Positions 1,899 to 44,466 of a stretch of 64,000 nucleotides of DNA are shown in pieces (position 1 is the first letter of the stretch; every line of letters starts with the position of its first letter). The notes beneath the pieces were generated by a model. It was given only the letters and a program-made list of their open reading frames with translations. It searched no databases and was not told the DNA's origin. A program made the position numbers and the translations under genes. Origin of the DNA: Macrostomum lignano (lineage: Eukaryota); contig NIVC01000866.1 of NCBI GenBank assembly GCA_002269645.1, positions 386,441 to 450,440 of the forward strand, written 5' to 3'.

Positions 1899-2473
1899 AT
1901 GAGTAAGAAACGAAAGCTGACCAATGGTCAGTTGTCGCCAAGCAGCAATAATGCCGCTAAGAAGCAGCGCCGATCGCAGCAAAAGCAGAAGACTGGCAGC
2001 AACCTTTCTGCTTCCGGAAGCAGCAACACCCGCTGTCGATACTGCAAGCAATTTCTAGACGACGCCGTGCAATTTCGCAACGAAAGACCCGACGCCCAGG
2101 AGGAGTGCGTGGCCCTGACCCACCCGGCCTTGTCGCTGGTGTCCGAGGGCTCCGTCCTGTCTGACGAAGCCGACGCCCGGCCGCAGCAGAAGCTGACGGA
2201 CTTCTCCGTGTACTGCCCGGCCGGCCACCTGTGCCCGTTCGACACCGGGCTGATTGAAGACAATGTCGAGCTGTACTTCAGCGGCCTGCTTGTGCCCGTC
2301 TACGCCGCTGTTGAAGACGAGGAGGCGGCCGGCTCGACGATGGTGGCCTGCTGTCGGATGGGGCCGATCGACGAGTGGTGGCTGTCCGGCTTTGACGGCG
2401 GCCAGAGGGCCATTGTGGGCTTCAGCACCGTGTATGGCGAGTATATTCTGGCTAAGCCGCACTCGGAATACAG
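1899..2473 (+). CDS. DNMT1: DNMT1 exon 1 (basic NLS-like start, N-half of RFTS)
   Basis: ATG at 1899 with in-frame TAA upstream at 1869-1871; donor AG|GTGAG at 2474 (phase 2). Confidence 0.92.
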
Positions 2474-5400
2474 GTGAGAGGGGTCAGTATGCGGGTGGCT
2501 TTAAATCCCAGATCCTAAAAAATCCTCAAATTCTAGATTGGGGTCCTCAAATCCCAGATTGTGGTCCTCAAATCTCAGATTGTGGTCCTAAAATCCCAGA
2601 TTGTGGTCCTCAAATCCTAGCTTGAGATCCTTAAATCCCAGATTGGAGTCCTCAAATCCCAGATTGGGGTCCTCAAATCCCAGATTGTGGTCCTCAAATC
2701 CCAGATTGGAATCCTCAAATCCCATATTGGAATCCTCAAATCCGAGATTCGAATCCTCAAATCCCAGATTAGAATCCTCAAATCCCAGATTGGGGTCCTG
2801 AAATCCCAGATTGGGGTCCTCAAATCCCAATAGGAGATCCCCGGATCCGGATTGGAATCTGAAATCCCAGATTGGAATCCTCAAATCCCAATAGGAGATC
2901 CCGGATCCGGATTGGAATCTGAAATCCCAAAGGTCCTCAATGAAAGCATCTCGGCATGACGCCCACGCACCCGCAGGTTCCTGATGGAGTCGGCCCTGGA
3001 AAAAATCCACCTAACCAAGCGCGTCACCGAGTGCCTGCTAGACGACAGTCGCAAAGAGGAGGCCGTGGAATACGAGGAGTTGCTTGAGTTGGTGGCGCCC
3101 ATCAGCGCCGATGCGGTTCAATCGCACGCCAGCTTCCTCATCGAGCAGGTCCGGGCAATGGACGATGAAGAGGGCACGGAGCTGATGCGGCAGCCCTGCA
3201 TGCAGACCCTGGTTGAGCTCGGAGGACTCAACGAAGATGCCGACAGCGAAGAAGCCGACCAGGAAAATGTCGATCGACCGACCGGACGCCGGGATCGCAG
3301 GTCTCGAGCGCCGGAGCGGCGTCCGCAACCTCGGCGTCATCGCCGGATTGTGCAGGCCAAGCCGCAGCAGGCGGCACAGTCGGCCGACACCAAGGCCACC
3401 GTCACTCCGCTGGTGCGCTCCGTGTTCGACTCCATCTTCCAGCATCAGCTGGACGACGACGCCGGGGCGGCAGATTTCGTCACTTCCACCAAGGCCGACA
3501 TGTTTCTGCGACTGGCTCGGCTCAATGCGGCGGCGCTAGTGCAGGTCAGGGTCGGGGTTTACAGCAATGCCATTGGTGTCTGGCCTGCGATGTCGCTAAT
3601 CTTCAGATGGAGCCGATGCCCTTCCAGATCCTCAGTTGCTGAGCCACCAGCCTCTCAGATCCTCAGTTGCTGGGCCAGCCTCCCAGATCCTCTGTTGCTG
3701 GGCCAGCCTCCCAGATCCTCAGTTGCTGGGCCAGCCTCCCAGATCCTCAGTTGCTGGGCCACCAGCCTCCCAGATCCTCAGTTGCTGGGCCACCAGCCTC
3801 CCAGATCCTCAGTTGCTGGGCCAGCCTCCCAGATCATCAGTTGCTGGGCCAGCCTCCCAGATCATCAGTTGCTGGGCCAGCCTCCCAGATCCTCAGTTGC
3901 TGAGCCACCAGCCTCCCAGATCCTGTTGCTGGGCCACCAGCCTCCTAGATCCTTAGTTGCTGGGCCAGCCTCCCAGATCCCTTCAATTTACATCCGCATA
4001 GCAACAAAGACGCGTCGCCACTCCGCAGGCTGGCGACCCGGTCGAGTTCCTCGGTGAGCCAATTCAGCGCAGGCCGCCCTCGGTAGCGGCGGGCCGGCGG
4101 CTCCGCCTGTACTATTCCGCTGTCCGTCTTGGCAGTCGCTGCCGCCTATCGATCGGCGATTTCGTCCTGTGGCGCTCAAGCTGGCGCGACGCCAGGCCCG
4201 GCTCTTGGCGCGCGGCCCGAATCACCAGGCTGTACTCCGAGGGCAGCGGGCCGCAGCTGCAGGCCAGGTTTCACGGCAGCGCCTTCCTGCACGGCGAGGA
4301 CACCATCCTGGGCCGGACTGCGGATCCGTGCGAGCTGTTCGCCACCAACGACGAGTGCTGCAGCGCCGAACTGGCCGCCGTGGTGATGCGGCTGGAGGTG
4401 GCGCGAAGATCTGCAGGTGAGGGGGTGGCGTGGTTGCTGCTGGAGACAGTCTGTGACCATGTTTGATGGCTGGATGCATCTGTCCTTGATGATGACGCGT
4501 TTAGTTGATGATTGACATATCCTTAATTGATATCGTGCAGGATTGATACATCCAGTTGATGATTGATACATCCGGTTGATGATTGATACATCTGGTTGAT
4601 GATTGATACATCCGGTTGATGATTGATACATCCGGTTGATTACTAATACTTCCGGTTGATGATTGATACTGATACATCCGGTTGATGATTGATACATCCA
4701 GTTGATGATTGATACATCCGGTTGATGATTGATACATCCGGTTGATGATTGATACATCCGGTTGATGATTGATACATCCAGTTGATGATTGACAGACCCA
4801 GTTAATGATTGACAGACCCAGTTAATGATTGACAGACCCAGTTGATGATTGACAGACCCAGTTGATGATTGACAGACCCAGTTGATGATTGACAGACCCA
4901 GTTAATGATTGACAGACCCAGTTGATGATTGACAGACCCAGTTAATGATTGACAGACCCAGTTAATGATTGACAGACCCAGTTAATGATTGACAGACCCA
5001 GTTGATGATTGACAGACCCAGTTGATGATTGACAGACCCAGTTAATGATTGACAGACCCAGTTGATGATTGACAGACCAAGTTGATGATTGACAGACCCA
5101 GTTGATGATTGACAGACCAAGTTGATGATTGACAGACCCAGTTAATGATTGACAGACCAAGTTGATGATTGACAGACCAAGTTGATGATTGACAGATCAA
5201 GTTGATGATTGACAGATCAAGTTGATGATTGACAGACCCAGTTAATGATTGACAGACCCAGTTAATGATTGACAGACCCAGTTGATGATTGACAGACCCA
5301 GTTGATGATTGACAGACCCAGTTAATGATTGACAGACCCAGTTGATGATTGACAGACCAAGTTGATGATTGACAGACCCAGTTGATGATTGACAGACCAA

Positions 5401-8400
5401 GTTGATGATTGACAGACCCAGTTGATGATTGACAGACCAAGTTGATGATTGACAGACCCAGTTGATGATTGACAGACCAAGTTGATGATTGACAGACCAA
5501 GTTGATGATTGACAGACCCAGTTGATGATTGACAGACCAAGTTGATGATTGACAGACCAAGTTGATGATTGACACATTAAAACACACCTGGAATCTCAGG
5601 TGACCGCCTAGTGACAGCGAGCGCAGCCGAGATGGAGGCGAACGCATCCGCAGGCCGTCTGTTCTACCAGAAAGTCTACCTGCCGGATAAAGGATTCTTC
5701 ATTGACCCGCCAAACGACCAAGCCGAGGAGGAGCCGGCCGATCCAGATGCCGATGCAGATGGCAACCAAGATGACGAGGACAGCTACAGAGATTGCTCAA
5801 CCTGCTCAGCGAGGCGGCGCTCCTGTCTGGAGGCCGTCCCCAGACCCTGCCGAGCTCTGACAGCCGCAGCTTCGGCCGCTTCAACAGCAGGTGCCAACAA
5901 GCAGCGCTACTCGGCCTTCCGCTGGCGAGGCCAGGTCTACAAGTTGCTAGGCTGTTGCTACCTGGAGCCTGGCTCGCATAAATTTGCAAACGAATCAACC
6001 AGGCGGGCTTCACAGCAGCAGCAGCAGCAGCCGGCTAAGGCAGATAAGGATTCGCCTTATCCCGACTCCGTGTACACTGAGCGGTATCGCAAGACTGCCT
6101 ACGTAAAAGGATCCAATGAGTCTACTCCGGCGCCTTATCAGGTGAGCTGTTTTGTCTTCTCTTTGGCATTCACCACTATCTTCACGATCACTGATTTCTT
6201 CACAATCACCAATATCCTCACATTCAATACTCGTAATTTCTTCACAATAATCAATCTCTTCACATTCACCAATATCAGATTCACTAATCTCCTCACATTT
6301 ACTAATCTCCTCACATTCACCAATCTCCTTACATTCACCAATCTCCTTACATTCAACAATCTCCTCGCATTCACCAATCTCCTCACATTCACTAATCTCC
6401 TCACATTTACTAATCTCCTCACATTCACTAATCTCCTCACATTCACAAATCTCCTCACATTTATCAATCTCCTCACATTCACAAATCTCAGATTCACTAA
6501 TCTCCTCACATTCACTAATCTCCCCACATTCACCAATCTCCTCGCATTCAACGATCTCCTCACATTCACCAATATCCTCACATTCACTAATCTTACATTC
6601 ACCAATCTCACATTCAATAAACTCACATTTACCAATCACATTCACCAATCTGCTTGCATTCACCAATCTCTCCACACTCACCAATCTGCTTGCATTCACC
6701 AATCTCTCCACACTCACCAATCTGCTTGCATTCACCATTCTCTCCACATTCACCAATCTGCTTGCATTCACCAATCTCTCCACATTCACCAATCTGCTTG
6801 CATTCACCATTCTCTCCACATTCACCAATCTGCTTGCATTCACCATTCTCTCCACATTCACCAATCTGCTTGCATTCACCATTCTCTCCACATTCACCAA
6901 TCTGCTTGCATTCACTATTCTCTCCACATTCACCAATCTGCTTGCATTCACTATTCTCTCCACATTCACCAATCTGCTTGCATTCACTATTCTCTCCACA
7001 TTCACCAATCTGCTTGCATTCACTATTCTCTCCACATTCACCAATCTGCTTGCATTCACCAATGTCTCCACACTCACCAATCTGCTTGCATTCACCATTC
7101 TCTCCACATTCACCAATCTGCTTGCATTCACCAATCTCTCCACATTCACCAATCTGTTTGCATTCACCATTCTCTCCACATTCACCAATCTGCTTGCATT
7201 CACCATTCTCTCCACATTCACCAATCTGCTTGCATTCACCATTCTCTCCACATTTACCAATCCCTTCGCGTTCCCGCTTTCAGATCGGACGAATTGTTGA
7301 AATATTCAAGCGAGGCCCGTCGTTCCCCTTGCGAATTCGGTTGAAGATGTTCTACAGACCCGAGGACGCGGTCGCCACCTTGGACTCTGACCGGCTCCGG
7401 CCGCTGCACCTTCTTTACTGCAGCGACGAGGAATGCTCCGTGGTTGTCTCCGAGCGCGTCAGAGGCCTCTGTACGGTTGTTCACGCGGACGAATTGGAAG
7501 GATTGTACACCTCGCCGGAGCAGTTCTTTCTGTCTGGTCCAGACCGCTTCTACTACGATACTCAGTTTGATGCTGACACTGGGCAGATGGAGTCTGTCTG
7601 CGTTGAGCAGGAGTCTGTAGATCTGCAGGCTATGCGGGATGAAGCTGCTCAACTGGCTCAGGTAGCTAAAAGTCAGATCTTACTGTCAGATAATCTAAGA
7701 GTCAGACCTTACTGTCAGATGATCTATAAGTCAGACCGTATTGTCAGATAATCTATGATGAGTCAGACCTTATTGTCAGATGATCTATGAGTCAGACCTT
7801 ATTGTCAGATGATCTATTAGTCAGACCTTATTGTCAGATAATCTATGATGAGTCAGACCTTATTGTCAGATAATCTATGAGTCAGACCTTGTTGTCAGAT
7901 TATCTATGATGAGTCAGACCTTATTGTCAGATAATCTATTATAAGTCAGACCTTATTGTCAGATGATCTATGAGTCAGACCTTATTGTCAGATAATCTAT
8001 GATGAGTCAGACCTTATTGTCAGATAATCTATGATGAGTCAGACCTTATTGTCAGATGATCTAAGAGTCAGACTTTATTGTCAGATGATCTATGAGTCAG
8101 ACCTTATTGTCAGATGATCTATGACGAGTCAGATCTTATTGTCAGATGATCTATGACGAGTCAGACCTTATTGTCAGATGATTTATGATGAGTCAGACCT
8201 TATTGTCAGATGATTTATGATGAGTCAGACCTTATTGTCAGATGATCTATGACGAGTCAGACCTTATTGTCAGATGATCTATGAGTCAGACCTTATTGTC
8301 AGATGATCTATTAGTCAGACCTTATTGTCAGATAATCTATGATGAGTCAGACCTTATTGTCAGATAATCTATGAGTCAGACCTTGTTGTCAGATTATCTA

Positions 8401-11400
8401 TGATGAGTCAGACCTTATTGTCAGATAATCTATTATAAGTCAGACCTTATTGTCAGATGATCTATGAGTCAGACCTTATTGTCAGATAATCTATGATGAG
8501 TCAGACCTTATTGTCAGATAATCTATGATGAGTCAGACCTTATTGTCAGATGATCTAAGAGTCAGACTTTATTGTCAGATGATCTATGAGTCAGACCTTA
8601 TTGTCAGATGATCTATGAGTCAGACCTTATTGTCAGATGATCTATGACGAGTCAGACCTTATTGTCAGATGATCTATGAGTCAGACCTTATTGTCAGATG
8701 ATCTATGACGAGTCAGACCTTATTGTCAGATGATCTATGACGAGTCAGACCTTATTGTCAGATGATTTATGATGAGTCAGACCTTATTGTCAGATGATTT
8801 ATCATGAGTCAGACCTTATTGTCAGATGATCTATGACGAGTCAGACCTTATTGTCAGATGATCTATGACGAGTCAGACCTTATTGTCAGATGATTTATGA
8901 TGAGTCAGACCTTATTGTCAGATGATTTATGATGAGTCAGACCTTATTGTCAGATGATCTATGATGAGTCAGACCTTATTGTCAGATAATCTATGATGAG
9001 TCAGACCTTATTGTCAGATAATCTATGATGAGTCAGACCCTATTGTCAGATAGTCTCTGAGTCACAATTTGCCTCAACTCCTCTCCCAATCGCCCAGGTG
9101 AAGCCGCTTCGCTGCCTAGACGTGTTCTCCGGCTGCGGCGGCCTCTCCGAGGGTTTGCACCAAGCCGGAGCCGCCGTCACCCACTGGGCCATCGAGCGCG
9201 ACCCGGACGCTGCCAAAGCGTTCGCATTGAATCATCCTGACTGCGCCGTCCTCACCGACGATTGCAACCGGCTGCTCCGTCTGGCCATGGACGGCGTGTC
9301 CGAGACTCCGGACAGTCGCCGGCTGCCGATTCCCCAGCGCGGCCAAGTGCAGCTGCTATGCGGCGGCCCGCCCTGTCAGGGCTACAGCGGCATGAACCGG
9401 TTCAGCGCCCGGGAGGCCAGCAAGTTGAAAAACTCTCTAGTGGCATCGTTTCTGAGCTACGCCGATTTCTACAGGCCGGACTATTTCCTGCTGGAGAATG
9501 TGCGCAATTTTGCCGCTTATAATAAGTCCTGCGTGCTGCAGCTCACCATGCGATGTCTGCTGGCCATGGGGTATCAGCTGGGTGAGTGAGCTTTGTATGT
9601 TCATAATCTCTCCCTGTTTGCCGTGTCTTATCTCACCCTGTCTGCCGTGTCTTATCTCACCCTGTCTGCCGTGTCTTATCTCTCCCTGTCTGCCGTGTCT
9701 TATCTCACCCTGTCTGCCGTGTCTTATCTCACCCTGTCTGCCGTGTCTTATCTCACCCTGTCTGCCGTGTCTTATCTCACCCTGTCTGCCGTAGCTTGGT
9801 GTCTTATCTCACCCTGTCTGCCGTGTCTTATCTCAACCTGTCTGCCGTGTCTTATCTCACCCTGTTTGCCGTGTCTTATCTCACCCTGTCTGCCGTGTCT
9901 TATCTCACCCTGTTTGCTGTGTCTTATCTCACCCTGTCTGCCGTGTCTTATCTCACCCTGTCTGCCGTGTCTTATCTCACCCTGTCTGCCGTGTCTTATC
10001 TCACCCTGTCTGCCGTGTCTTATCTCACCCTGTCTGCCGTGTCTTATCTCACCCTGTCTGCCGTGTCTTATCTCACCCTGTCTGCTGTGTCTTATCTCAC
10101 CCTGTCTGCCGTAGCTTAGTGTCTTATCTCACCCTGTCTCCCGTAGCTTGGTGTCTTATCTCACCCTGTCTGCCGTAGCTTGGTGTCTTATCTCACCCTG
10201 TCTGCCGTAGCTTGGTGTCTTATCTCACCCTGTCTCCCGTAGCTTAGTGTCTTATCTCACCCTGTCTCCCGTAGCTTGGTGTCTTATCTCACCCTGTCTG
10301 CCGTAGCTTGGTGTCTTATCTCACCCTGTCTCCCGTAGCTTAGTGTCTTATCTCACCCTGTCTCCCGTAGCTTGGTGTCTTATCTCACCCTGTCTGCCGT
10401 AGCTTGGTGTCTTATCTCACCCTGTCTGCCGTAGCTTGGTGTCTTATCTCACTCTGTCTGCCGTAGCTTAGTGTCTTATCTCACCCTGTCTCCCGTAGCT
10501 TAGTGTCTTATCTCACCCTGTCTCCCGTAGCTTGGTGTCTTATCTCACCCTGTCTCCCGTAGCTTAGTGTCTTATCTCACCCTGTCTCCCGTAGCTTGGT
10601 GTCTTATCTCACCCTGTCTCCCGTAGCTTGGTGTCTTATCTCACCCTGTCTCCCGTAGCTTGGTGTCTTATCTCACCCTGTCTGCCGTAGCTTAGTGTCT
10701 TATCTCACCCTGTCTCCCGTAGCTTGGTGTCTTATCTCATCCTGTCTACCGTAGCTTGGTGTCTTATCTCACCCTGTCTGCCGTGTCTTATCTAACCCTG
10801 TCTGCCGTGTCTTATCTCTCCCTGTCTGCCGTGTCTTATCTCTCCCTGTCTGCCGTGTCTTATCTCACCCTGTCTGCCGTGTCTTATCTCACCCTGTCTG
10901 CCGTGTCTTATCTCACCCTGTCTGCCGTGTCTTATCTCACCCTGTCTGCCGTGTCTTATCTCACCCTGTCTGCCGTGTCTTATCTCACCCTGTCTGCCGT
11001 GTCTTATCTAACCCTGTCTGCCGTGTCTTATCTCACCCTGTCTGCCGTGTCTTATCTCACCCTGTCTGCCGTGTCTTATCTCACCCTGTCTGCCGTGTCT
11101 TATCTAACCCTGTCTGCCGTGTCTTATCTCACCCTGTCTGCCGTGTCTTATCTCTCCCTGTCTGCCGTGTCTTATCTCACCCTGTCTGCCGTGTCTTATC
11201 TCACCCTGTCTGCCGTGTCTTATCTCACCCTGTCTGCCGTGTCTTATCTCACCCTGTCTGCCGTGTCTTATCTCACCCTGTCTGCCGTGTCTTATCTCAC
11301 CCTGTCTGCCGTGTCTTATCTCACCCTGTCTGCCGTGTCTTATCTCACCCTGTCTGCCGTGTCTTATCTCACCCTGTCTGCCGTGTCTTATCTCACCCTG

Positions 11401-14094
11401 TCTGCCGTGTCTTATCTCACCCTGTCTGCCGTGTCTTATCTCACCCTGTCTGCCGTGTCTTATCTAACCCTGTCTGCCGTGTCTTATCTCACCCTGTCTG
11501 CCGTGTCTTATCTCACCCTGTCTGCCGTGTCTTATCTCACCCTGTCTGCCGTGTCTTATCTAACCCTGTCTGCCGTGTCTTATCTCACCCTGTCTGCCGT
11601 GTCTTATCTCTCCCTGTCTGCCGTGTCTTATCTCACCCTGTCTCCCGTAGCTTGGTGTCTTATCTCACCCTGTCTCCCGTAGCTTGGTGTCTTATCTCAC
11701 CCTGTCTGCCGTAGCTTAGTGTCTTATCTCACCCTGTCTCCCGTAGCTTGGTGTCTTATCTCATCCTGTCTATCTCGTGTCTAATCTCACCCTGTGACTG
11801 CCTCTCTCGTGTCTAATCTCACCCTGTCTCTCTCGTGTCTAATCTCACCCAGTCTATTTCGTGTCTTATCTCACCCTGTCTATCTTGTGTCGATCTCCAA
11901 GATGCCATCCAGGCTGCTCATCAAGCATTAGTCAGCTCTGGCCATGCCTTCGCATTTCGTATTAACGAATTGGAAGCCATATTGGCATCCCTAGCTTGAC
12001 TGTAACGATGGCAGCTAGAACAGATTGCAGCTGTAAAGAGATTTCAGTCTGCAAGGGGCTCCTTCACATCGAGTTGAGAGTCTTTTAGTTTTTTTTGCTC
12101 ACACTCGAGTTGGCTGAGTCCTACATGCATGTCTTGTATTATAGCTAACCCGCTGTGTCCATCTTGTGTGCAACTGCTTCTCTCATCTCCCCGATTCTTA
12201 CTTCATTTCAGTCTCTCCTCTTTCCCTCTTCCCCTCTCTTCTTCCCCCGTCTCCCTCTCACCCTGTCTCCCTCTCCCCCTTTCTCTCTCTCATCCCGTCT
12301 CCCCTCTCATCCCCTGTCCCCCTCATCCCCTGTCTCACCTCATCCTCTATCTCCCTCTCACCCTGTCTCCCTCTCACCCTGTCTCCCCCTCATCCCCTGT
12401 CCCCGTCATCCCCTGTCTCACATCATCCTCTGTCTCTCTCTTACCCTGTATCCCTCTCCCCCTGTCCCCCTCATCCCCTGTCCCCCTCATCCCCTGTCTC
12501 CCTCTCCCCCTGTCTCCCTCTCACCCTGTCTCCCTCTCACCCTGTCTCCCTCTCACCCTGTCTCCCTCTCACCCTGTCTCCCCCTCATCCCCTGTCCCCC
12601 TCATCCCCTGTCCCCCTCATCCCCTGTCTCCCTCTCACCCTGTCTCCCTCTTACCCTGTATCCCTCTCACCCTGTCTCTCTCCCCCTGTCTCCCCCTCGT
12701 CCCCCCTCATCCCCTGTCCCTCTCATCCCGTCTCCCCCCATCCCCTGTCTCCCCAATCCCCTGTCTCCCCCCCCCCTGTCTCCTGGCGTGCTGATGAGAT
12801 GGGCCTTGCAGCTCCCTAGCCACTAACGCTAATCCGCTCGACCGCAGGCGCCGCCATCCTGCAAGCCGGCCAGTTCGGGGTGCCGCAGACTCGTCGCCGC
12901 CTCATCATCCTGGCCGCCGCTCCGGGTCGCCAATTCGCCCAATTCCCAATCGCCGTTCACTCGTTCTCGCCCAAAGCCTGCGCCGGCCTCGCCCTGCTAG
13001 TCGGCGATCGCCGATACGAACCACCGACCTCGCCTGCCAGCGGCTGCTTCAGCGGCCCGCTTCGACCAATCACAGTTGGTGACGCGCTGAGCGACCTGCC
13101 GGTGATCGACAGCGGCGGCGCATCCCGACTGGACCAGCCGGCGCCCTACGGGTCGAAGCCGAAGACTCATTATCAGCTGATTATGCGGGCCGGTCGGCTG
13201 GACAATTCAGACAAGCTCACTGATCATGTGACTAAGCAGCTGACTCCGCTGGTTGAAGCGAGGTTGGCCCTGATTCCCACTTGTCCCGGAGCTGACTGGC
13301 GCGACCTGCCCAATGTGGAGGTTTGTATTTGTGCTTAATTCCTGTCTTGATTCTTCTATTAATCAACCTCATAACTGTCTCATAATCGCCTTGATAATTA
13401 CCTAAGAATCCCCCTGATAATTGCTAAGAATCGCCCTGATGCTCACTAAGAATCGCCCTGATGCTCATTGAGAATCGCCCTGATGCTCACTGAGAATCGC
13501 CCTGATGCTCATTGAGAATCGCCCTGATGCTCATTGAGAATCGCCCTGATGCTCATTGAGAATCGCCCTGATGCTCACTGAGAATCGCTCACTGAAGTCC
13601 CAAACCGAGCTCAAACATCGCTCTCCCCATGCCCGCAGATCACTCTCAGCGACGGCTCCCTGGCCCGCCGCCTCCGCTACACGCACGGCGACCGAGGCGT
13701 CTGTCCGTGCGCCATCAAGCCCGGCAAATGCGACAGCCAGGCCAAGCAGCTCAACACGCTGATCCCCTGGTGCCTGCCGCACACCGGCGACCGGCACAAC
13801 CACTGGGCCGGCCTGTATGGCAGGCTGGACGTCGAAGGCTTCTTCTCCACCACAGTGACCAATCCCGAGCCAATGGGCAAGCAGGGCCGAGTGGTGCACC
13901 CAACCCAGAACCGGGTCGTGTCCGTGCGGGAATGCGCCAGATCGCAGGGCTTCCCGGATGCTTACAGATTCGCTGGCGACCTGGTTGCCAGGCATCGTCA
14001 GATTGGCAACGCGGTGCCGCCTCCGCTGGCCAGGGCGCTGGGAGTGCAGCTGGTTCGGGCTCTGGCGGCTGCGGTTCAGGATTCGCCTACTTAG
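1899..14094 (+). CDS. DNMT1: DNA (cytosine-5)-methyltransferase 1, 8 exons, ~1296 aa: join(1899..2473,2977..3544,4002..4416,5600..6141,7284..7661,9098..9581,12848..13320,13639..14094)
   Basis: All introns are GT-AG and phase-consistent (3891 nt in total). RFTS motifs [26 protein letters not shown] and [14 protein letters not shown]; BAH1; BAH2 ([21 protein letters not shown]|IGRIVEIF). MTase motif I DVFSGCGG, catalytic GGPPCQG (Cys codon 9374-9376), [30 protein letters not shown] and [12 protein letters not shown]. Recognised by similarity to vertebrate DNMT1 from memory; no search run. Confidence 0.96.
2505..2935. repeat. ~21-bp minisatellite (CCTCAAATCCCAGATTGG..) in DNMT1 intron 1
   Basis: Visible tandem array. 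Confidence 0.9.
2977..3544 (+). CDS. DNMT1: DNMT1 exon 2 (C-half of RFTS to [17 protein letters not shown])
   Basis: Acceptor CCGCAG at 2971-2976 gives [17 protein letters not shown]; donor CAG|GTCAGG at 3545 (phase 0; exact donor less certain). Confidence 0.85.
3620..3980. repeat. Minisatellite (GTTGCTGGGCCAGCCTCCCAGATCCTCA-like) in DNMT1 intron 2
   Basis: Visible tandem array; explains the read-through ORF 2984-4057. Confidence 0.9.
4002..4416 (+). CDS. DNMT1: DNMT1 exon 3 (BAH1)
   Basis: VEFLGEP...LYYSAVRLG...SIGDFVL...ARITRLY...[16 protein letters not shown]. Acceptor TAG 3999-4001 (in-frame alternative CAG 4026-4028); donor GTGAG at 4417. Not in the ORF track because it lacks a start codon. 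Confidence 0.88.
4500..5575. repeat. 20-bp minisatellite (GTTGATGATTGACAGACCCA) in DNMT1 intron 3
   Basis: ~50 copies in two subtypes (GATACATCCG, then GACAGACCCA). Confidence 0.95.
5600..6141 (+). CDS. DNMT1: DNMT1 exon 4 (end of BAH1, start of BAH2)
   Basis: [44 protein letters not shown]; acceptor TCTCAG ending 5599, donor GTGAG at 6142. Confidence 0.9.
6170..7262. repeat. 18-bp then 36-bp minisatellite in DNMT1 intron 4
   Basis: Translates as TNLLTF and [12 protein letters not shown] repeats. Confidence 0.95.
7284..7661 (+). CDS. DNMT1: DNMT1 exon 5 (BAH2 and linker)
   Basis: IGRIVEIF...KMFYRPED...[10 protein letters not shown]...GPDRFYY; acceptor TTTCAG ending 7283, donor GTAGC at 7662. 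Confidence 0.9.
7670..9055. repeat. 28-31-bp minisatellite (GAGTCAGACCTTATTGTCAGATGATCTATGAT) in DNMT1 intron 5
   Basis: ~45 copies; the variant series at ~7765-8110 recurs at ~8280-8620. Confidence 0.95.
9098..9581 (+). CDS. DNMT1: DNMT1 exon 6 (MTase motifs I, IV, VI)
   Basis: [28 protein letters not shown]; acceptor CCCAG ending 9097, donor GTGAGT at 9582. Confidence 0.95.
9605..11880. repeat. 24-bp and 32-bp minisatellite (TGTCTTATCTCACCCTGTCTGCCG +/- TAGCTTGG) in DNMT1 intron 6
   Basis: A block of 32-bp units (~10110-10760) lies between blocks of 24-bp units. Confidence 0.95.
12215..12780. repeat. Polypyrimidine minisatellite near the 3' end of DNMT1 intron 6
   Basis: CCCTGTCTCCCTCTCA-like units. 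Confidence 0.9.
12848..13320 (+). CDS. DNMT1: DNMT1 exon 7 (motif VIII, start of TRD)
   Basis: [49 protein letters not shown]; donor GTTTGT at 13321. Confidence 0.93.
13395..13595. repeat. 22-bp minisatellite (GAGAATCGCCCTGATGCTCATT) in DNMT1 intron 7
   Basis: ~8-9 copies. Confidence 0.9.
13639..14094 (+). CDS. DNMT1: DNMT1 exon 8 (TRD, motifs IX and X, stop)
   Basis: [62 protein letters not shown]; stop TAG 14092-14094. Confidence 0.95.
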
Positions 14095-16000: not shown

Positions 16001-16031
16001 CTAATCAAACGCTAATATCTATAACTCGCAG

Positions 16032-18120
16032 ACGACCTTTGACGAGGCCCAGCCGCAGTCGCAGCTGCCCGAGCAGCAGGAGCAGCTCACGCGCCGCCGA
16101 AGCTCAGCCGCGTCCAGCTGCATCTCCGTCCAGCTGCAGCAGCCGCAGCTGGACCAGGACCTGGCCGAGAAGCTCGCCCGCCGTCTGCAACTCTCTGATG
16201 CCGGCAGCGAAGATGCCGCAGCCGTCGGGGCAGTCGCAGCCGACAGCGAAGCCGGAGCCCAGTGTGAGCATCAGTCAGCCGCGAATGCCATCGACGACAT
16301 GTTGAGCGAGCGTCGGGAACGTCAGCGGCTCCTGCTGGCTCGCTGCGGCCCCTGCCTGTGCCCTCAGCTGGCAGCCAAACTTGCCACCAGGCTGGAGAAG
16401 TCCGAGTCCACCGATAGCGACGTGTCCGAGACCTCCTTCAGCTTTATCGCCGCGTCGCCTCAGCAGCAGAAACGAAATCCGCCTCCTCCGGCTTCTTCGA
16501 CACCGCCGCCAGCACCGCCGCCTCCGTCCAATCCTTCAGCTGGCGTCGCCGAACCGCCAGCAGCAGCGGCGCCAGCCGCGGAGCCGCCCGCTGACTTGCC
16601 GGAAAAGCCGCCGCAGCTGGCTGCTACTAGAAGGAAATTCAACCCCAGCCTGGAGTTCCCGAGTTCTCCCATCGCGACATCAATCGCCTCAGAGAAGCCT
16701 TCGTTATGTACGACGCTGATGGGATAATTTCATCGGATTCAACGATCTCAAACTGATGATGGAGAAGCTGGGCGCGCCACAGACTCATCTGGGTTTGAAG
16801 TCGATGATTAAAGAGGTGCGGATTTTGTGCGCGTAACTACCGGTAAATGGTATCGTTCCTGTCTCCCTCTCCCTGTCTCCCTCTCCCTGTCTCCCTCTCC
16901 CTGTCTCCCTCTCCCTGTCTCCCTCTCCCTGTCTCCCTCTCCCTGTCTCCCTCTCCCTGTCTCCCTCTTCTCCCTGTCTCCCTCTCCTCCCTGTCTCCCT
17001 CTCCTCCCTGTCTCACTCTCCTCCCTATCTCTCCTTCTCCTCCCCGTCTCCCTCTCCTCCCTGTCTCCCTCGCGACCCCCGCCTCCCTTTTCTCCCTGGC
17101 TCCCTCTCCCCTGTCTCCCTCTCATCTCTCTCTCGCCCCATCTCTTTTTCACCTCCTTCATGTCTCCCTCTCCTCCCTGTCTCTCCCTATCCTCCCTGTC
17201 TCTCCCTCTCCTCCCTGTCTCTCCCTGTCTCTCCCTCTCCTCCCTGTCTCCCTATCCTTCCTGTCTCCCTCTCCTCCCTGTCTCTCCCTATCCTTCCTGT
17301 CTCTCCCTCTCCTCTATGTCTCTCCCTCTCCTCCCTGTCTCTCCCTATCCTTCCTGTCTTCCTCTCCTCCCTGTCTCTCCCTCTCCTCCCTGTCTCTCCC
17401 TCTCCTCCCTGTCTCTCCCTCTCCTCCCTGTCTCTCCCTCTCCTCCCTGTCTCTCCCTATCCTTCCTGTCTCCCTCTCCTCCCTGTCTCTCCCTCTCCTC
17501 CCTGTCTCTCCCTATCCTTCCTGTCTCTCCCTATCCTCCCTGTCTCCCTCTCCGCCCTGTCTCTCTCCCTCTCCCTGTGTCCCTCTTCTCCCTCTCAATC
17601 CCCCGAATCTCTTTTCCACCTCCTTCCTGTCTCGTTCTTTTTTTCCAAAAATTTATTTCCCAACATTTCATAAAATGTCTTTTTGCAGTTTTGATTAACT
17701 TTAAACCCAATTTAGTTTCCTGATTTTCTTTTTGGACCCATGGCATGCTTTTTATCAACGTGTTTTTAAAAAATAATATCCCTTTGATCGATCGATTGAC
17801 AGGTCGACGAGGATCACGACAGTCGCATCAATTTCCGCGAATTCCTGGCGATATTCCGCAAGGCCAGAGCCGGCCAGCTGGACTACTCTGGCGAGCTCAT
17901 GGCCTGGTACGACTGCTACGTTGAGGTGTCGGAGATCAACGTTGAAGAGGTGGGCGTTATGGAGGCTAAGAACTTCTTCGAGTCCAAGATCGCCATCCAG
18001 TCGGCTGATGGCAAACTGCAGGCCGAGCTGAGGGAGCAGCGGCTGCGGCGGCAGGCCGAGGAGGAGGAGAAGCAAAGAAGCAGAGACAGCTTCCGGAATA
18101 CGAGAGCCATGTTCACGTGA
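16032..18120 (+). CDS. EFHD2: EF-hand domain protein EFHD1/EFHD2 (swiprosin-1) homolog; exons ~16032..16815 (two apparent 1-nt deletions) and 17803..18120; 5' end unresolved
   Basis: DLAEKLARRL and QLAAKLATRL, then RRKFNPSLEF[P]EFSHRDINRLREAFVMYDAD[G]DNFIGFNDLKLMMEKLGAPQTHLGLKSMIKE|VDEDHDSRINFREFLAIFRKA...SEINVEEVGVMEAKNFFESKI. These match swiprosin motifs. The frame shifts at 16659-16660 and 16721-16722. Confidence 0.9.
16857..17600. repeat. Polypyrimidine repeat in the EFHD intron
   Basis: CTCCCTGT/CTCTCC units. Confidence 0.9.
17803..18120 (+). CDS. EFHD2: EFHD last exon (EF-hand 2, ligand-mimic helix, coiled coil)
   Basis: Acceptor GACAG ending 17802; open frame to TGA 18118-18120. Confidence 0.9.
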   Translation, partial: VDEDHDSRINFREFLAIFRKARAGQLDYSGELMAWYDCYVEVSEINVEEVGVMEAKNFFESKIAIQSADGKLQAELREQRLRRQAEEEEKQRSRDSFRNTRAMFT

Positions 18121-39511: not shown

Positions 39512-42500
39512 CTGAAGACATTTGATGTCGCAAAAAGGTTGAAATTTATTGGCGAGAGGATTGGAAAATTCCTGGGACGGATAAATGGAGATCCTCAGCG
39601 GATAAGGGGAAATTCTCAAGGGCGGATAAGTGGAGATTCTCAGGGGAGGATAAGGGAGATTCTCAGGGGCGGATAAGGGCAGATTCTCAGGGGAGGATAA
39701 GGGAGATTCTCAGGGGCGGATAAGGGCAGATTCTCAGGGGAGGATAAGGGCAGATTCTCAGGGGCGGATAGGGAGATTCTCAGAGGAGAATAAAGGAGAT
39801 TCTCAGGGGCGGATAAGGAGATTCTCAGGGGCGAATAAAGGGAGGTTCTCAGGGGCGGATAAGGGAAGATTCTCAGGGGCGGATAAGGAGATTCTCAGAG
39901 GAGGATAAGGGAAGATTCTCAGGGGCGGATAAGGGAGGATTCTCAGGGGCGGATAAGGGAAGATTCTCAGGGGCGGATAAGGGAAGATTCTCAGGGGCGG
40001 ATAAGGGAAGATTCTCAGGGGCAGATAAGGGAGATTCTCAGGGGCGGATAAGGGGAGATTCTCAGGGGCGCATAGTAGAGATGAAAAGCTTTCAAACTCA
40101 CTTTTGCCTCTCATTCTTGTAGGCGTTGGTGAGATCATCAAACAGTTTAGTGTTCATCTCCATAAAGGTCTTGAGCACATTGTAGACCATGGCCACAATG
40201 GTTTGGTTCCAGTGCTCTCGCGAAATCCTGTAGAACGCTGGGAACAGAATGGGCATGAGGACTTCATTGTGCTCCTCAACCAGTGATGCAATGTACTCAT
40301 TGTTCCAGTAGAGCACCGCTCGCTCGGCCACCTGCGGATTGGTGCAGCCAGCTTGTAACTTGCTTTTGAAAATAAATGCTTACTAGAGAACTCGGATTGT
40401 CTTGTATCTACAAACTACCCCGGGTACTAAATTCTACCCTAGGTGCTTAAAAACTACCGTAGGTACTTACAAAATACCCTAGGTGTCTACAAACTACCGT
40501 AGGTACTTACAAACTATCCTATATGCTTACAAACTACCCTAGGTACTCAAAACTACCCTAGGTGTCTATAAACTACTCTAGGTACTTACAAACTAGCCTA
40601 GGTACTTACAAACTAGCCTAGGTACTTACAAACTAGCCTAGGTACTTACAAACTAGCCTAGGTACTTACAAACTATCCTAAGTACTTACAAACTAGCCTG
40701 TGTTTGTAAACTACCCTAAGAACATACAAACTACCCTAGGTGTCTATAAACTACCCTAAGTACTTACAAACTACCCTAGGTGTCTATAAACTACCCTAGG
40801 TGTCTGTAAACTACCCTAAGTACTTACAAACTACCCTAGGTGTCTATAAACTACCCTAAGTACTTACAAACTACCCTAGGTGTCTATAAACTACCCTAAG
40901 TACTTACAAACTACCATAGGTGTCTATAAACTACCCTAAGTACTTACAAATTACCCTAGGTGTCTGTAAACTACCCTAGGTACTTACAAACTACCCTAGG
41001 TCTCTATAAACTACCCTAAGTACTTACAAACTACTCTAGGTGTCTGTAAACTACCCTAGCTACTCACAAAGGTTTTTAAAAACTATCCTAGGTATCTAAA
41101 AGCTACTCAGACAGCAAAACTAGCCAACGCACTCATACAACATGCCTTATCTAACCGTAATGCAATACCTTACAGAAAGAGAAGCACGAGTTCCTACCTG
41201 AAAATGCGAGCTGCCCACAGACCGGGCCACCTGTCTAAACAGCGGTCTCATAATCTTCTCAAACTGGGCCGGCTCGATCACGTCCAGAATCTCTTCAATC
41301 TCGCCGAGGTACATCACCTCCTTGGAGCTGACTGTCCTGGGCCAGAACTTGAGCAGCCCCAGCACCACCGGCTCGGTGAGGGTTGAGTCCTTCTCAAGGA
41401 ACTGCACTACACAGTAGGCCAGCTGGGCGTGAAACATGCCGAGAGACTTGGCCTTGTGCAGCGGCAGCAGCACTTTCATGAGGAACTGCTTGTGCTCAGC
41501 CTTCAACGGCAGCGCAAATCCATTGATGATGCTGCCCAGAATCTCAAGCAACTCGCCAACACCATTGAACTTCTCAGTCTGATAGATGAACCGCAGGAAA
41601 ATATTATTAATCTGCTTCCTAATGAAAGCTCTCAGGCCGAGAAATTTGCCATAGATTCGGTGGAGAACAGTTTTCAAAAAGTCGCGCTCTCGAGGATCTT
41701 CGCTGTCGAAGAGTTCGAGGAGCTGAGGTTTGAAGAGGGATTATTAAATTGGGATAACTGATCAGACTGTCAGATTAGTTCAATGTACATCTTAGTAACA
41801 GTTAAAAAGTTTTTGCCATATTTTTCTTGCATTGCTACTAACAGTATATGAACAAGCACATGGCTAACGTGTTTAATGTTTTGCTATTCATTTACTCCTA
41901 TTTCTACTAACAGTAGATGAACAAGCACATGGCTAACGTGTTTAATGTTTTGCTATTCATTTACTCCTATTTCTACTAACAGTAGATGAACAAGCAAATG
42001 GCTATCGTGTTTAATGTTTTGCTATTCATTTACTCGCATTTCTACTAACAGTAGATGAACAAGCACATGGCTAACGTGTTTAATGTTTTGCTATTCATTT
42101 ACTCCTATTTCTACTAACAGTAGATGAACAAGCACATGGCTAACGTGTTTAATGTTTTGCTATTCATTTACTCGCCTTTTTACTAACAGTAGATGAACAA
42201 GCAAATGGCTATCGTGTTTAATGTTTTGCTATTCATTTACTCGCCTTTTTACTAACAGTAGATGAACAAGCAAATGGCTATCGTGTTTAATGTTTTGCTA
42301 TTCATTTACTCGCATTTCTACTAACAGTAGATAAACAAGCACATGGCTAACGTGTTTTATGTTTTGCTATTCATTTACTTGAATTTCTACTAACAGTAGA
42401 GTAGTTGACATAATAATATCTAAATTTCTTACTTTAACATTAACATTAACGGTGAAATATTATTAACATACCTGCAGTACGAACCGCTGGTCGATGTACT

Positions 42501-44466
42501 TTTTAGCCACGGAAGGTTGGAAATCTGGCGACTCCAGTACGCGCAGAAAGAATTCGTAGATGAACTAGAATATTATGAAATCAGGTCATTCGGAGCTTTC
42601 TTTCATTTTAAGGCACTGTTATTAAACGATTTATAAAGGCTATAGCAGACCTGAAGATGCGGCCAAGAAGCCTCCAATGTTGGATCATCCTCATCTGGAT
42701 CGAACTCGGCGTTGTCGGACGGAGGCAGATTGCGGAAAATGTTGCACGCAATCTGCGGATTGGGGGAGGGGATGGGCGGCTTTATGATCCAAACAGGTGT
42801 ACATTTTTACATTCGCGGGGGGTTGGGGGAGGGGTGGGTGGCTTTGTGACCCAAGCATATGTATGTACATTTGTACATTGGCGGGGGTAAGGAAAATTTG
42901 TGTACATGCGAATGGGCACTTTAGGGAGAGAAAAGATGAGGCGTAGGAGGGATAAAGAGAAAAAATAACGTCAAATGTACAGTCAACCATTGGGAGCACT
43001 CCATCAAGACCAGGGACTTCTAGTTTCTTGGACTTAAAGCCAACTTGCGTATTAAGGCCCCAATTGACTTGAATCTCTCGTTTCATGATTTGGGGGTGCT
43101 GAGATGCCAAGACTTACAAGGGAATTGCTGAGATGCCAAGACTCAGGGGGAATGCTGAGATGCCAAGACTCAGGGGGAATGCTGAGATGCCAAGACTCAG
43201 GGGGACTGCTGAGATGCCAAGACTCACAGAGGGGAATGCTGAGATGCCAAGACTCACAGAGGGGAATGCTGAGATGCCAAGACACACAAGTGAATGCCGA
43301 GATGCCAAGACTCAGGGGGAATGCTGAGATGCCAAGACTCAGGGGGAATTTCTGAGATGCCAAGACTCAGGGGAATGCTGAGATGCCAATACTCACAGAG
43401 GGGAATGCTGAGATGTCAAGACTCAGGGGAATGCTGAGATGCCAAGACTCACAGGGAATGCTGAGATGTCAAGACTCAGGGGAATGCTGAGATGCCAAGA
43501 CTCAGGGGGAATAGCTGAGATGCCAAGACTCACAGAGGGGAATAGCTGAGATGCCAAGACTCAGGGGAATAGCTGAGATGTCAAGACTCACAGGGGGGAT
43601 GCTGAGATGCCAAGATTCAGGGGGAATGCTGAGATGCCAAGACTCAGGGGGAATTTCTGAGATGCCAAGACTCAGGGGAATGCTGAGATGCCAATACTCA
43701 CAGAGGGGAATGCTGAGATGTCAAGACTCAGGGGAATGCTGAGATGCCAAGACTCACAGGGAATGCTGAGATGTCAAGACTCAGGGGAATGCTGAGATGC
43801 CAAGACTCAGGGGGAATAGCTGAGATGCCAAGACTCACAGAGGGGAATAGCTGAGATGCCAAGACTCAGGGGAATGCTGAGATGCCAAGACTCAGGGGAA
43901 TGCTGAGATGCCAAGACTCAGGGGAATGCTGAGATGCCAAGACACAGGGGGAATTGCTGAGATGCCAAGACACAGGGGGAATTGCTGAGATGCCAAGACT
44001 CAGGGGAATGCTGAGATGCCAAGACTCAGGGGGATGCTTAAATGTCACTTGTCAGGCTTGAATACTGAAATGTGCTCACCATTCGTATAATCTCTGGATA
44101 AGTTGAGTCCTGCAGCACGCCCCTAGTGACAGTGACAAAGTCAACCAGTTCATTCAGGCAGGTCCGTTTAACCTCTTTCGATTTCAGATCGGACACGGGG
44201 TCGCTGAAGTCGAACACAACGCGGCACTGCTGCAGCTTCTGCTGGAACAGTTCAATCTGATCAGCGCTGGTTGCATCTTTCAGCGGCGGCAGAGCGTTCA
44301 GCTCAGTTGGGGCTTTCGGTCGATAATGCGACGAGCCGTGAGAGCGCTTCGGTTTTTTGCTCGCCTTCAGCTCATTGCGGTTGCGAAATGGGTCGGCCTT
44401 GTCACCGCTAGGAGCTGCATTGGCGGCTACATGAGGAGCTGCAGAAGATTTTCCATGGGCTGACAT
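39445..44466 (-). CDS. PPP2R5: PP2A regulatory subunit B56 (PPP2R5A/E, widerborst-like), 467 aa: complement(join(39445..39511,40102..40331,41198..41722,42472..42564,42651..42752,44080..44466))
   Basis: [103 protein letters not shown]. Six phase-consistent GT-AG exons (1404 nt). Confidence 0.96.
39590..40070. repeat. ~23-bp minisatellite (GGGAGATTCTCAGGGGCGGATAA) in PPP2R5 intron 5
   Basis: Visible. Confidence 0.92.
40102..40331 (-). CDS. PPP2R5: PPP2R5 exon 5
   Basis: [13 protein letters not shown]...[22 protein letters not shown]. Confidence 0.95.
40420..41100. repeat. ~20-bp minisatellite (TACTTACAAACTACCCTAGG) in PPP2R5 intron 4
   Basis: Visible. Confidence 0.92.
41198..41722 (-). CDS. 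PPP2R5: PPP2R5 exon 4
   Basis: [17 protein letters not shown]...GSSHFQ. Confidence 0.95.
41833..42400. repeat. 69-bp tandem repeat in PPP2R5 intron 3, ~8 copies
   Basis: CTACTAAC recurs at 41904, 41973 and 42042. Confidence 0.93.
42472..42564 (-). CDS. PPP2R5: PPP2R5 exon 3
   Basis: [31 protein letters not shown]. Confidence 0.93.
42651..42752 (-). CDS. PPP2R5: PPP2R5 exon 2
   Basis: [34 protein letters not shown]. Confidence 0.93.
43100..44035. repeat. ~27-31-bp minisatellite (GCTGAGATGCCAAGACTCAGGGGGAAT) in PPP2R5 intron 1
   Basis: Visible. Confidence 0.93.
44080..44466 (-). CDS. PPP2R5: PPP2R5 exon 1
   Basis: MSAHG...[10 protein letters not shown]...LPPLKD; donor GTGAGC. The frame stays open upstream to an acceptor at 44506-44507. 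Confidence 0.9.

Follow-up and report, generated by a model that had tools for sequence, protein, structure and literature searches.

In the DNMT1 predicted for the flatworm Macrostomum lignano, the CXXC finger and the linker that follows it are truly missing. With a probability of about three in four, this protein is a genuine and selectively maintained animal orthologue, which has secondarily lost CXXC and nearly all of the linker and would still act in maintenance methylation. The gene (GenBank BOX15_Mlig007124g1) is located at positions 1899-14094 of the forward strand of the window, the whole analysed stretch of 64 kb from contig NIVC01000866.1. It comprises eight exons with GT/AG at all junctions, giving an uninterrupted ORF of 1296 amino acids. 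Across the gene, the window is 100% identical to the contig, and the window-derived protein is 99% identical to BOX15_Mlig007124g1, the deposited protein being 1287 amino acids long.

Exon 1 (1899-2473) opens at position 1899 with the ATG, 15 nt downstream of an in-frame TAA, and codes for a short N-terminus rich in Lys and Arg as well as the first portion of the RFTS (RFD) domain. Exon 2 (2977-3544) encodes the rest of RFTS, an insert, the Activating Helix and a 35-residue replacement segment. In exon 3 (4029-4416, with the acceptor of the deposited model), an 11-residue lead-in strand precedes BAH1, and exon 4 (5600-6141) runs from the end of BAH1 through the BAH1-BAH2 connector into the first part of BAH2. 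Exon 5 (7284-7661) contributes BAH2 and the connector between BAH2 and the methylase, which carries no (GK)n repeat. The methylase motifs I to VI, including a 13-residue stretch and ENVRNF, are encoded by exon 6 (9098-9581), motif VIII (QTRRR) together with the initial portion of the TRD by exon 7 (12848-13320), and the 26-residue 5mC-reading pocket of the TRD with motifs IX and X by exon 8 (13639-14094), which ends with the TAG stop at 14092-14094. All eight exons are on the forward strand.

The initial annotation of this region had noted that the CXXC finger and its linker appear to be missing, and in this respect Pfam, the Cys count, the spacer length and a six-frame profile search agree. 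A Pfam scan of the spliced 1296-residue protein, which had been proposed as a check, recognised a single DNMT1-RFD stretch (PF12047, E 1.8e-31, residues 92-231), two BAH stretches (PF01426, E 3.9e-19), which were modelled with high confidence, and DNA_methylase (PF00145, E 3.8e-45), and gave no match at E<=1 to zf-CXXC, the eight-Cys domain PF02008, in the space from RFTS to BAH1. PF02008 is also missing from the deposited 1287-residue protein and is present in 10 of 10 non-Macrostomum full-length hits. As had been noted, the stretch after the conserved 17-residue motif behind RFTS (3389-3439) contains no Cys; it consists of 35 residues encoded at 3440-3544. In the numbering of the 1287-residue protein, there is no Cys between C266 and C419. 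The space from the Activating Helix to BAH1 comprises 32 residues and 0 Cys, versus 84-92 residues and 8-9 Cys in CXXC-bearing DNMT1s, and it includes 4 D/E and 3 K/R, versus 12-17 D/E and 16-22 K/R. By this comparison of composition and length, the acidic/basic autoinhibitory linker between CXXC and BAH1 was not found. The phmmer search against the PDB returned human DNMT1 with E 1.9e-256 in two aligned blocks, one covering RFTS (query 43-300) and the other extending from BAH1 to the C-terminus (query 415/430-1294), and the unaligned gap between them is the site of CXXC and the linker in the human chain.

Intron 2 lies between the exon of the Activating Helix and that of BAH1, approximately at the position expected for the coding sequence of the CXXC finger and linker. 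Its GT donor at 3545 directly follows exon 2, and it extends to 4028, ending in CAG, or to 4001 if a TAG acceptor is used. The initial annotation placed the intron at 3545-4001 with an in-phase splice to 4002. The donor and the frame hold, but the acceptor needs correction: the GenBank (P0001) and UniProt (P0002) models both join ...AAALVQ to AGDPVEF, which places the acceptor at 4029 (ctccgCAG/GCT) and not at 4002 (gcaTAG/CAA). The other six acceptors of the gene are all CAG. The junction from 3544 to 4029 or 4002 is based on GT/AG signals, frame, homology and these two deposited gene models. Both acceptors are in frame and differ by nine Cys-free residues (QQRRVATPQ), and the correction leaves the conclusion on the loss of CXXC unchanged. 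The earlier description of the intron as about 70 bp of unique sequence and a minisatellite, with no Cys-rich exon, proved accurate: 75 nt of unique sequence were counted, followed by a minisatellite at 3620-3980 (28-nt unit, 12.4 copies), and the intron has no CXXC-coding potential.

It is extremely unlikely that the absence is an artefact of the gene model or assembly, with a CXXC exon hidden in the minisatellite intron, collapsed from it, or used in an alternative isoform only. Intron 2 is mostly tandem repeat, a type that assemblies can collapse, and its unique part contains a CxxCxxC pattern; however, the intron is built alike in two independent contigs, with one more minisatellite unit in the second genomic copy, and the same residues are joined in a model that comes from an older assembly. 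Moreover, a profile of 26 DNMT1 CXXC domains, searched through all six reading frames of the 64-kb window, gave no score in the intron, and its best match (E 0.5) lay outside the DNMT1 gene. No hidden CXXC exon is therefore present in the window, between exons 2 and 3 or elsewhere. The CxxCxxC pattern (QCHWCLAC, 3568-3588, in one frame) was considered as a CXXC relic and rejected as a probable chance occurrence. It obtains no score with the DNMT1-CXXC profile, its frame differs from that of exon 2, and it lacks usable splice sites and meets a stop in the repeat. It is the sole CxxCxxC pattern within the first 16 kb, and such a pattern occurs in 0.3-0.5% of comparable 81-nt stretches. A loss through simple exon skipping obtained no support from the intron positions of the pseudoscorpion Cordylochernes, where the Activating Helix and most of CXXC are on one exon. 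The nearest Cordylochernes intron is of phase 2 and lies inside the last CXXC codons, while intron 2 of M. lignano is of phase 0.

A second genomic copy, on contig NIVC01000112.1, encodes an identical protein. The exons of the two copies differ at 2 of 3864 nt, both differences being silent, versus 149 of 6291 nt in the aligned intron (about 2.4%) and about 5% in the flanks (Fisher p 1e-28). Judging by this pattern, the gene is under purifying selection and is not a decaying duplicate, which had been named as an outcome that would undermine the original claim. The other such outcome, a CXXC-bearing paralog, was not found in M. lignano by a word-index search, which covered less than the whole genome and performed poorly on this low-complexity-rich protein. 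Run with the RFTS-BAH1 region, the search returned almost nothing and missed the gene's own protein, and is therefore uninformative on relatives. The sequences P0002, P0020, P0021 and P0178, which were considered as paralogs (71-93% identity over their best local alignment), turned out to be older-assembly models of this one gene, either frameshifted or reading into introns. A single DNMT1 type was found in M. lignano.

These data also bear on the idea of a degenerating duplicate or pseudogene, or a non-catalytic DNMT1 in a species with fading methylation, as has been proposed for Dimorphilus with its CXXC-less protein and for Tribolium. CXXC, the linker, (GK)n and the N-terminal region are missing together, low 5mC has been reported in M. 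lignano, and the loss of CXXC in Dimorphilus accompanies the loss of 5mC (PMC11292947). Such decay is nevertheless very improbable here, given the ORF intact over eight exons, the conservation of all catalytic motifs, the contrast between silent exon differences and non-coding divergence, the lack of any other DNMT1 type among the sequences found, and the reported presence of 5mC and DNMT3.

The machinery retained in the protein is extensive. The statement of the initial annotation that the catalytic motifs are intact was borne out, since motifs I, IV (PCQ), VI (ENV), VIII, IX and X were located both in the protein and in the alignment, together with a large TRD of the DNMT1 type. The 25 residues of the 5mC pocket are conserved in the alignment, and a preference for hemimethylated CpG is putative on this ground. 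The RFTS region matched human RFTS structures with E about 1e-47, and the alignment to human DNMT1 starts at residue 43. The 17-residue Activating Helix motif (aa 330-346, nt 3389-3439) aligns with vertebrate KATTTKLV..FDTFF and agrees with the consensus sought after RFTS, K/T-A-T-x-T-x-L-V...F-[DE]-x-[FI]-F. It was modelled as a helix with pLDDT of about 80; its role is taken from published work (PMC12474915). Between RFTS and the Activating Helix lies an acidic and Arg-rich insert (aa 277-320, nt 3230-3361), and the 35-residue Cys-free replacement segment contains a predicted helix at aa 364-374. No (GK)n repeat was found between BAH2 and the methylase, where GKGKGK occurs in 6 of 6 aligned comparison species, and the long N-terminal region binding DMAP1 and PCNA is also missing. 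An AlphaFold model of residues 330-1287, based on a 130-sequence alignment, reached pLDDT 87.8 and pTM 0.91; it replaced an earlier run on residues 88-1287 with an 11-sequence alignment (pLDDT 52.5). The model superimposes on mouse and human DNMT1(731-1602) with a target-normalised TM of 0.92-0.93 and an rmsd of about 3 A.

Mammalian DNMT1 (human and mouse; PDB 4WXX, 3PT6, 4DA4, 7XI9) arranges RFTS, Activating Helix, BAH1, BAH2 and C5-MTase just as the M. lignano protein does, to which it is 37-45% identical over the full length. In contrast to the mammalian enzyme, the M. lignano protein has no CXXC, acidic/basic linker, (GK)n or N-terminus binding DMAP1 and PCNA, and carries the extra acidic and Arg-rich insert. 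The plant MET1 (Arabidopsis; PDB 9M5X, 9M5U) also lacks CXXC, and the target-normalised TM of the model is about 0.85 with its DNA-bound MTase fragment (9m5u_A) and about 0.64 with the full-length structure (9m5x). Unlike the M. lignano protein, however, MET1 carries a pair of RFTS domains, along with an acidic linker and a connecting linker specific to plants; in M. lignano, Pfam gave a single RFD, and neither tandem RFTS domains nor the plant connecting linker were found. The best sequence matches are animal DNMT1s (E 1e-256 versus 1e-126 for MET1), and the M. lignano protein groups with these by sequence. An engineered mouse Dnmt1 without CXXC (Frauer et al. 2011, PMC3032784) likewise represents a DNMT1 without the finger, but that laboratory deletion removed the finger alone and kept the linker, while M. 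lignano is a natural variant where the linker is also gone.

The initial annotation named plant MET1 as a CXXC-less relative and overrated how rare the loss is: it is also recurrent in arthropods and has been published for annelids, namely for Dimorphilus gyrociliatus and for one of the Capitella teleta paralogs (PMC11292947). CXXC-less DNMT1s with the RFD-BAH-BAH-methylase arrangement were found in wasps, aphids, lice, mites, ticks, a centipede, a copepod and an ostracod. Eight representatives were confirmed by Pfam, including a gall wasp, an aphid, a louse, a braconid wasp, a mite, a centipede and a copepod; for a second mite, the ostracod and two ticks, the Cys-pattern search was the sole indication. 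The arthropod set comprises Tigriopus japonicus, Strigamia maritima, Menopon gallinae, Macrosiphum euphorbiae, Belonocnema kinseyi, Chelonus insularis, Halotydeus destructor, Notodromas monacha and ticks. In several insects, the CXXC-less protein may be one among several paralogs. Like M. lignano DNMT1, the CXXC-less animal proteins share the RFD-BAH-BAH-MTase order and keep the Activating Helix motif, and the spacer between the helix and BAH1 is about 18-50 residues long, except in Chelonus (80). Unlike M. lignano, Belonocnema retains the end of the finger together with the acidic stretch. The boundaries of the deletions differ, and the losses in different phyla look like independent events. 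Most annelids have a DNMT1 with RFD-CXXC-BAH-BAH and a KG linker (PMC11292947), and the same composition was found in the mollusc Biomphalaria. The presence of CXXC in Biomphalaria and most annelids points to a secondary loss in M. lignano. In the literature searched, no paper stated that the finger is missing from M. lignano DNMT1. The protein is one more CXXC-less DNMT1, and the loss, already known in invertebrates, is not unusual.

The initial annotation suggested that the loss of CXXC and the linker removes an autoinhibitory layer, which would result in appreciable methylation of unmethylated CpG and a de novo contribution. In truncated mouse DNMT1(650-1602), disruption of CXXC binding to CpG or deletion of the linker increased activity on unmethylated DNA, and deletion of residues 701-711 of the human linker raised activity generally (PMC6316889). 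Since both the finger and the linker are absent from M. lignano DNMT1, some regulatory change may therefore exist. However, full-length mouse Dnmt1 without CXXC was similar to the wild type in vitro and in the rescue of methylation in dnmt1-/- ES cells, where H19a was not remethylated (PMC3032784), and in a full-length in vitro study CXXC-DNA binding had no effect on specificity (PMC6316889). The CXXC-less MET1 is specific to hemimethylated CG, autoinhibited by RFTS and activated by ubiquitinated H3 (PMC12474915). In M. lignano, the 5mC pocket of the TRD and RFTS are intact, and only low 5mC levels and the retention of DNMT3 have been reported for the species. On balance, an appreciable de novo role is unlikely, and the published tests, as we read them, give no firm sign that the loss of CXXC alters the enzyme.

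It seems most likely that M. lignano DNMT1 acts in maintenance methylation, as its conserved residues suggest. The protein retains RFTS, the Activating Helix and the two BAH domains ahead of the C5-methyltransferase, with the 35-residue spacer and its predicted helix in front of BAH1. The parental 5mC would be read by the TRD pocket, RFTS would provide the main autoinhibition and the reading of ubiquitin, and the Activating Helix would switch on the catalytic domain. The CXXC gate would be dispensable, as in many other lineages, and de novo methylation would be left to the DNMT3 reported for the species. There is a small chance that this is a naturally un-gated sole maintenance DNMT1. In that case, either the 35-residue segment with the helix at aa 364-374 or the insert at aa 277-320 might have taken over the role of the linker, or nothing did, and relaxed discrimination might shape the low 5mC pattern.

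M. lignano DNMT1 is not a new kind of enzyme. The species is the main genetically tractable free-living flatworm reported to keep DNMT1 and DNMT3, and for the design of knock-downs, antibodies and assays it matters that the sole DNMT1 type found is a minimal RFTS-BAH-BAH-methylase. The repeated loss of CXXC in invertebrates, with RFTS, the Activating Helix and the TRD pocket kept, provides comparative evidence for the CXXC gate as an accessory and not a core element of maintenance methylation, a matter on which the mammalian literature disagrees.

The DNMT1 gene region is identical base for base to contig NIVC01000866.1 (GCA_002269645.1). An eight-exon model was obtained on the forward strand by linking GC-rich exons at GT/AG sites: exon 1 (1899-2473), exon 2 (2977-3544), exon 3 (from 4002 or 4029 to 4416), exon 4 (5600-6141), exon 5 (7284-7661), exon 6 (9098-9581), exon 7 (12848-13320) and exon 8 (13639-14094). 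The start ATG lies at 1899, with an in-frame stop 15 nt 5' of it, and the preceding 1.9 kb contain no GC-rich coding segment. The reading frame is uninterrupted and encodes 1296 or 1287 residues, depending on the exon 3 acceptor; its product shares 99% identity with GenBank BOX15_Mlig007124g1. Two in-frame acceptors, TAG at 4001 and CAG at 4028, lie 27 nt apart. The initial annotation used the former and began exon 3 at 4002, but both deposited models read AAALVQ joined to AGDPVEF, which corresponds to the CAG acceptor and a start at 4029, and a 27-nt shift is probable. The remaining acceptors of the gene are CAG in every case; alternative use of both exon 3 acceptors is possible. The stretch 4002-4028 differs at one position between the two genomic copies of the gene (G to C at 4025), a change that is silent if the stretch is coding. 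The TAG version adds nine residues, QQRRVATPQ, and because these include no Cys, the choice of acceptor does not touch the conclusion on the CXXC domain.

The Pfam scan proposed in the initial annotation recognised in the spliced protein a DNMT1-RFD domain (the RFTS, residues 92-231), two BAH domains and a C5 methylase, and no zf-CXXC even at E<=1. Among PDB sequences, human and mouse DNMT1 gave matches with E values of about 1e-256. The alignment falls into two parts, one covering the RFTS (query 43-300), the other running from BAH1 to the C-terminus (query 415/430-1294); the unaligned gap between them is the position of the CXXC domain and autoinhibitory linker in the human chain. When six DNMT1s that carry CXXC were aligned with the M. 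lignano protein by MAFFT, the conserved 17-residue motif proved to be followed in M. lignano by a Cys-free stretch, where the six proteins have KRxRCGxCExCQxPDCGxCxxC..., and no cysteine occurs between C266 and C419 (numbering of the deposited 1287-aa protein). The segment between the helix motif and PVEFLGEP, which leads into BAH1, is 32 residues long, compared with 84-92 in CXXC-bearing proteins, which bears out the reported absence of the CXXC-BAH1 linker. Intron 2, described initially as free of any Cys-rich exon, indeed comprises 75 nt of unique sequence and a minisatellite with a 28-nt unit, and none of its three forward frames contains a stretch resembling a CXXC domain. All six frames of the 64-kb window were searched with an HMM made from 26 DNMT1 CXXC domains, which gave no significant match (the best, with E 0.5, fell outside the DNMT1 gene). 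Judged from the sequence, the loss of the CXXC domain is real, and it had been correctly located apart from the probable acceptor shift.

A CxxCxxC pattern is present in the unique 5' part of intron 2 (3568-3588, forward strand), between the exons flanking the missing domain. It is the sole such pattern within the first 16 kb of the window, and the chance rate is about 0.3-0.5% per comparable stretch. The second genomic copy has the stretch unchanged. The DNMT1-CXXC profile assigns it no score, and its frame is not that of exon 2. It is probably a coincidence; a relic of the CXXC domain is conceivable. Intron 2 separates the exon of the helix motif from that of BAH1, and this position suggests that the CXXC domain may have been lost as a whole exon. 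Such a route is not matched by the one intron-rich comparison, the pseudoscorpion Cordylochernes, in which the helix and most of the CXXC share one exon and the nearest intron, within the last CXXC codons, is of phase 2, intron 2 of M. lignano being of phase 0.

A second locus of the same assembly (contig NIVC01000112.1) encodes an identical 1287-aa protein. Intron 2 is organised alike there, with one repeat unit more. Over 3864 nt of exon sequence the copies show 2 differences, both silent, and over 6291 aligned nt of intron they show 149 (Fisher p 1e-28); the flanks show about 94-95% identity. The near identity of the exons beside diverged introns and flanks indicates that the CXXC-less coding sequence is under purifying selection and is not decaying, which speaks against a degenerate duplicate. 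Each of the seven introns is occupied almost throughout by its own minisatellite, unrelated to the others: 2523-2890 (intron 1, unit 21 nt), 3620-3980 (intron 2, 28 nt), 4541-5574 (intron 3, 20 nt), 6167-7262 (intron 4, 18/36 nt), 7671-9051 (intron 5, 32 nt), 9606-11891 and 12212-12783 (intron 6, 24/32 plus 16 nt) and 13384-13588 (intron 7, 22/44 nt). Minisatellite length is unequal between the two copies in all seven. No further M. lignano DNMT1 emerged when the whole protein and the catalytic domain were used as queries, and the CXXC-bearing paralog envisaged at the outset did not turn up; by these searches a close paralog is excluded, a distant one less fully. Four candidate paralogs (P0002, the UniProt model, and P0020, P0021 and P0178) were rejected: long stretches are identical to the DNMT1 gene and the rest is garbled, and they are frameshifted or intron-reading models of this gene from an older assembly.

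The catalytic motifs are intact, as stated initially: I, IV (PPCQG), VI (ENVRNF), VIII, IX and X were all located, and the TRD segments of the 5-methylcytosine pocket (26 residues) are near-identical to the consensus. The post-RFTS motif singled out in the initial annotation is the Activating Helix, two aromatic residues of which insert into the methylase Toggle Pocket in active DNMT1 (PMC12474915). It is kept in M. lignano, with I-F at the aromatic positions, likewise in several insects. Between the RFTS and this helix lies a lineage-specific insert, acidic (15 residues) and then Arg-rich (20 residues), at aa 277-320 (nt 3230-3361, forward strand). The BAH2-methylase connector (7560-7661 and 9098-9110, forward strand) has no (GK)n repeat, an element that all six comparison species carry ahead of the methylase. 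No DMAP1-binding or PIP-box N-terminus was found in the protein; short N-termini also occur in two beetle comparison proteins (Pyrocoelia, Phyllotreta). An AlphaFold model from 11 sequences was unusable (pLDDT 52.5). A model of residues 330-1287 from 130 sequences reached pLDDT 87.8 and pTM 0.91 and resembled DNMT1(731-1602) crystal structures with a target-normalised TM of 0.92-0.93 and rmsd of about 3 A. In it, the Activating Helix (336-351) precedes an acidic loop of low confidence, and the replacement segment is predicted to hold another helix (364-374, pLDDT 72-80).

A phmmer search with the RFTS-to-BAH1 region as query, exhaustive over 1.84 billion cluster representatives, gave 46 matches of at least 700 residues, about 20 of which were flagged by their Cys pattern as lacking CXXC. 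Pfam found RFD, BAH, BAH and methylase, with PF02008 absent, in all eight flagged proteins tested. By source name, the flagged proteins come from the gall wasp Belonocnema, the aphids Macrosiphum and Metopolophium, the louse Menopon, the braconid wasp Chelonus, the mites Halotydeus and Leptotrombidium, the centipede Strigamia, the copepod Tigriopus (identical sequences occur in Logan contigs of 4-6 kb, a transcript-compatible size), the ostracod Notodromas, two ticks and the amoebozoan Mastigamoeba. The aligned CXXC-less proteins keep the Activating Helix motif, which is separated from BAH1 by 18-51 residues (80 in Chelonus); their deletion boundaries are not the same, which points to independent losses. 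CXXC-less DNMT1 has already been published for the annelid Dimorphilus and one Capitella paralog (PMC11292947). Since DNMT1 of the mollusc Biomphalaria has the complete RFD-CXXC-BAH-BAH-KG architecture, the flatworm state is a secondary loss. Canonical animal DNMT1 has the CXXC, the linker and the GK repeat, whereas the M. lignano protein lacks all three; its orthology, its fold and all its catalytic features nevertheless make it a DNMT1. Plant MET1 is also CXXC-less (PMC12474915), but the single RFD of the M. lignano protein and its nearest sequences, which are animal, show that it is no MET1. No mention of the loss in M. lignano was found in the literature searched; the deposited protein records already display the domain content.

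Several other features of the window were recorded. An AIF-1-like EF-hand gene follows DNMT1 (16027-18120, forward strand; Pfam AIF-1/EF-hand in the second copy). Its frame is broken in the window by two one-base deletions in homopolymer runs near 16657 and 16721 (CCCC to CCC, GGGG to GGG), as compared with the second copy; these are either indel errors of the assembly or the mark of a disabled gene. The reverse strand carries, at about 41147-44511, exons of a gene for a B56 regulatory subunit of protein phosphatase 2A (Pfam B56, E 1.4e-78 and 1.4e-19, two ORF segments). The observed/expected ratio of CpG amounts to 1.0 for the DNMT1 exons and 0.38 for the introns of the gene; it is 0.57 for the whole window and 0.24 for the AT-rich upstream region 1-1898, where GpC reaches 1.47. 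CpG is thus depleted in non-coding DNA and not in exons, the reverse of the usual invertebrate gene-body pattern; this could reflect germline methylation of intergenic or repeat DNA, or just mutation bias. The upstream region includes a GC-rich island (200-420), tRNA-derived SINE-like by eye; ARAGORN called no tRNA in the 64 kb.

Domain content, conserved residues, selective constraint and fold being established for M. lignano DNMT1, the functional reading proposed initially, namely that loss of CXXC and linker enhances de novo activity, can be considered. It is in line with the autoinhibition model derived from truncated mouse DNMT1(650-1602), in which disruption of the CXXC-DNA contact or deletion of the linker increases activity on unmethylated DNA, and with the general rise in activity after deletion of human linker residues 701-711 (PMC6316889). 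However, full-length Dnmt1 without CXXC is as active in vitro as the wild type and rescues methylation in dnmt1-/- ES cells, H19a not being remethylated (PMC3032784); in vitro work on the full-length enzyme (Bashtrykov 2012, cited in PMC6316889) places specificity in the catalytic domain; and MET1 without CXXC is still specific for hemimethylated DNA (PMC12474915). Low 5mC and the retention of DNMT3 are also reported for M. lignano (PMC11292947, PMC9246332, PMC10658182), so that its methylation can be explained without a de novo role of DNMT1. Enhanced de novo activity seems improbable, and a large functional effect of the kind proposed is unlikely. We infer that the enzyme would still be a maintenance methyltransferase, with specificity for hemimethylated CpG located in the TRD and catalytic domain; its main regulation would be RFTS-mediated autoinhibition, relieved via ubiquitin reading and the Activating Helix, and the CXXC gate would simply have been lost. 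That the gate is dispensable and the enzyme still one of maintenance has, in our estimate, a probability of roughly three in four. M. lignano represents a further case of an evidently common kind, an animal DNMT1 without the CXXC finger.
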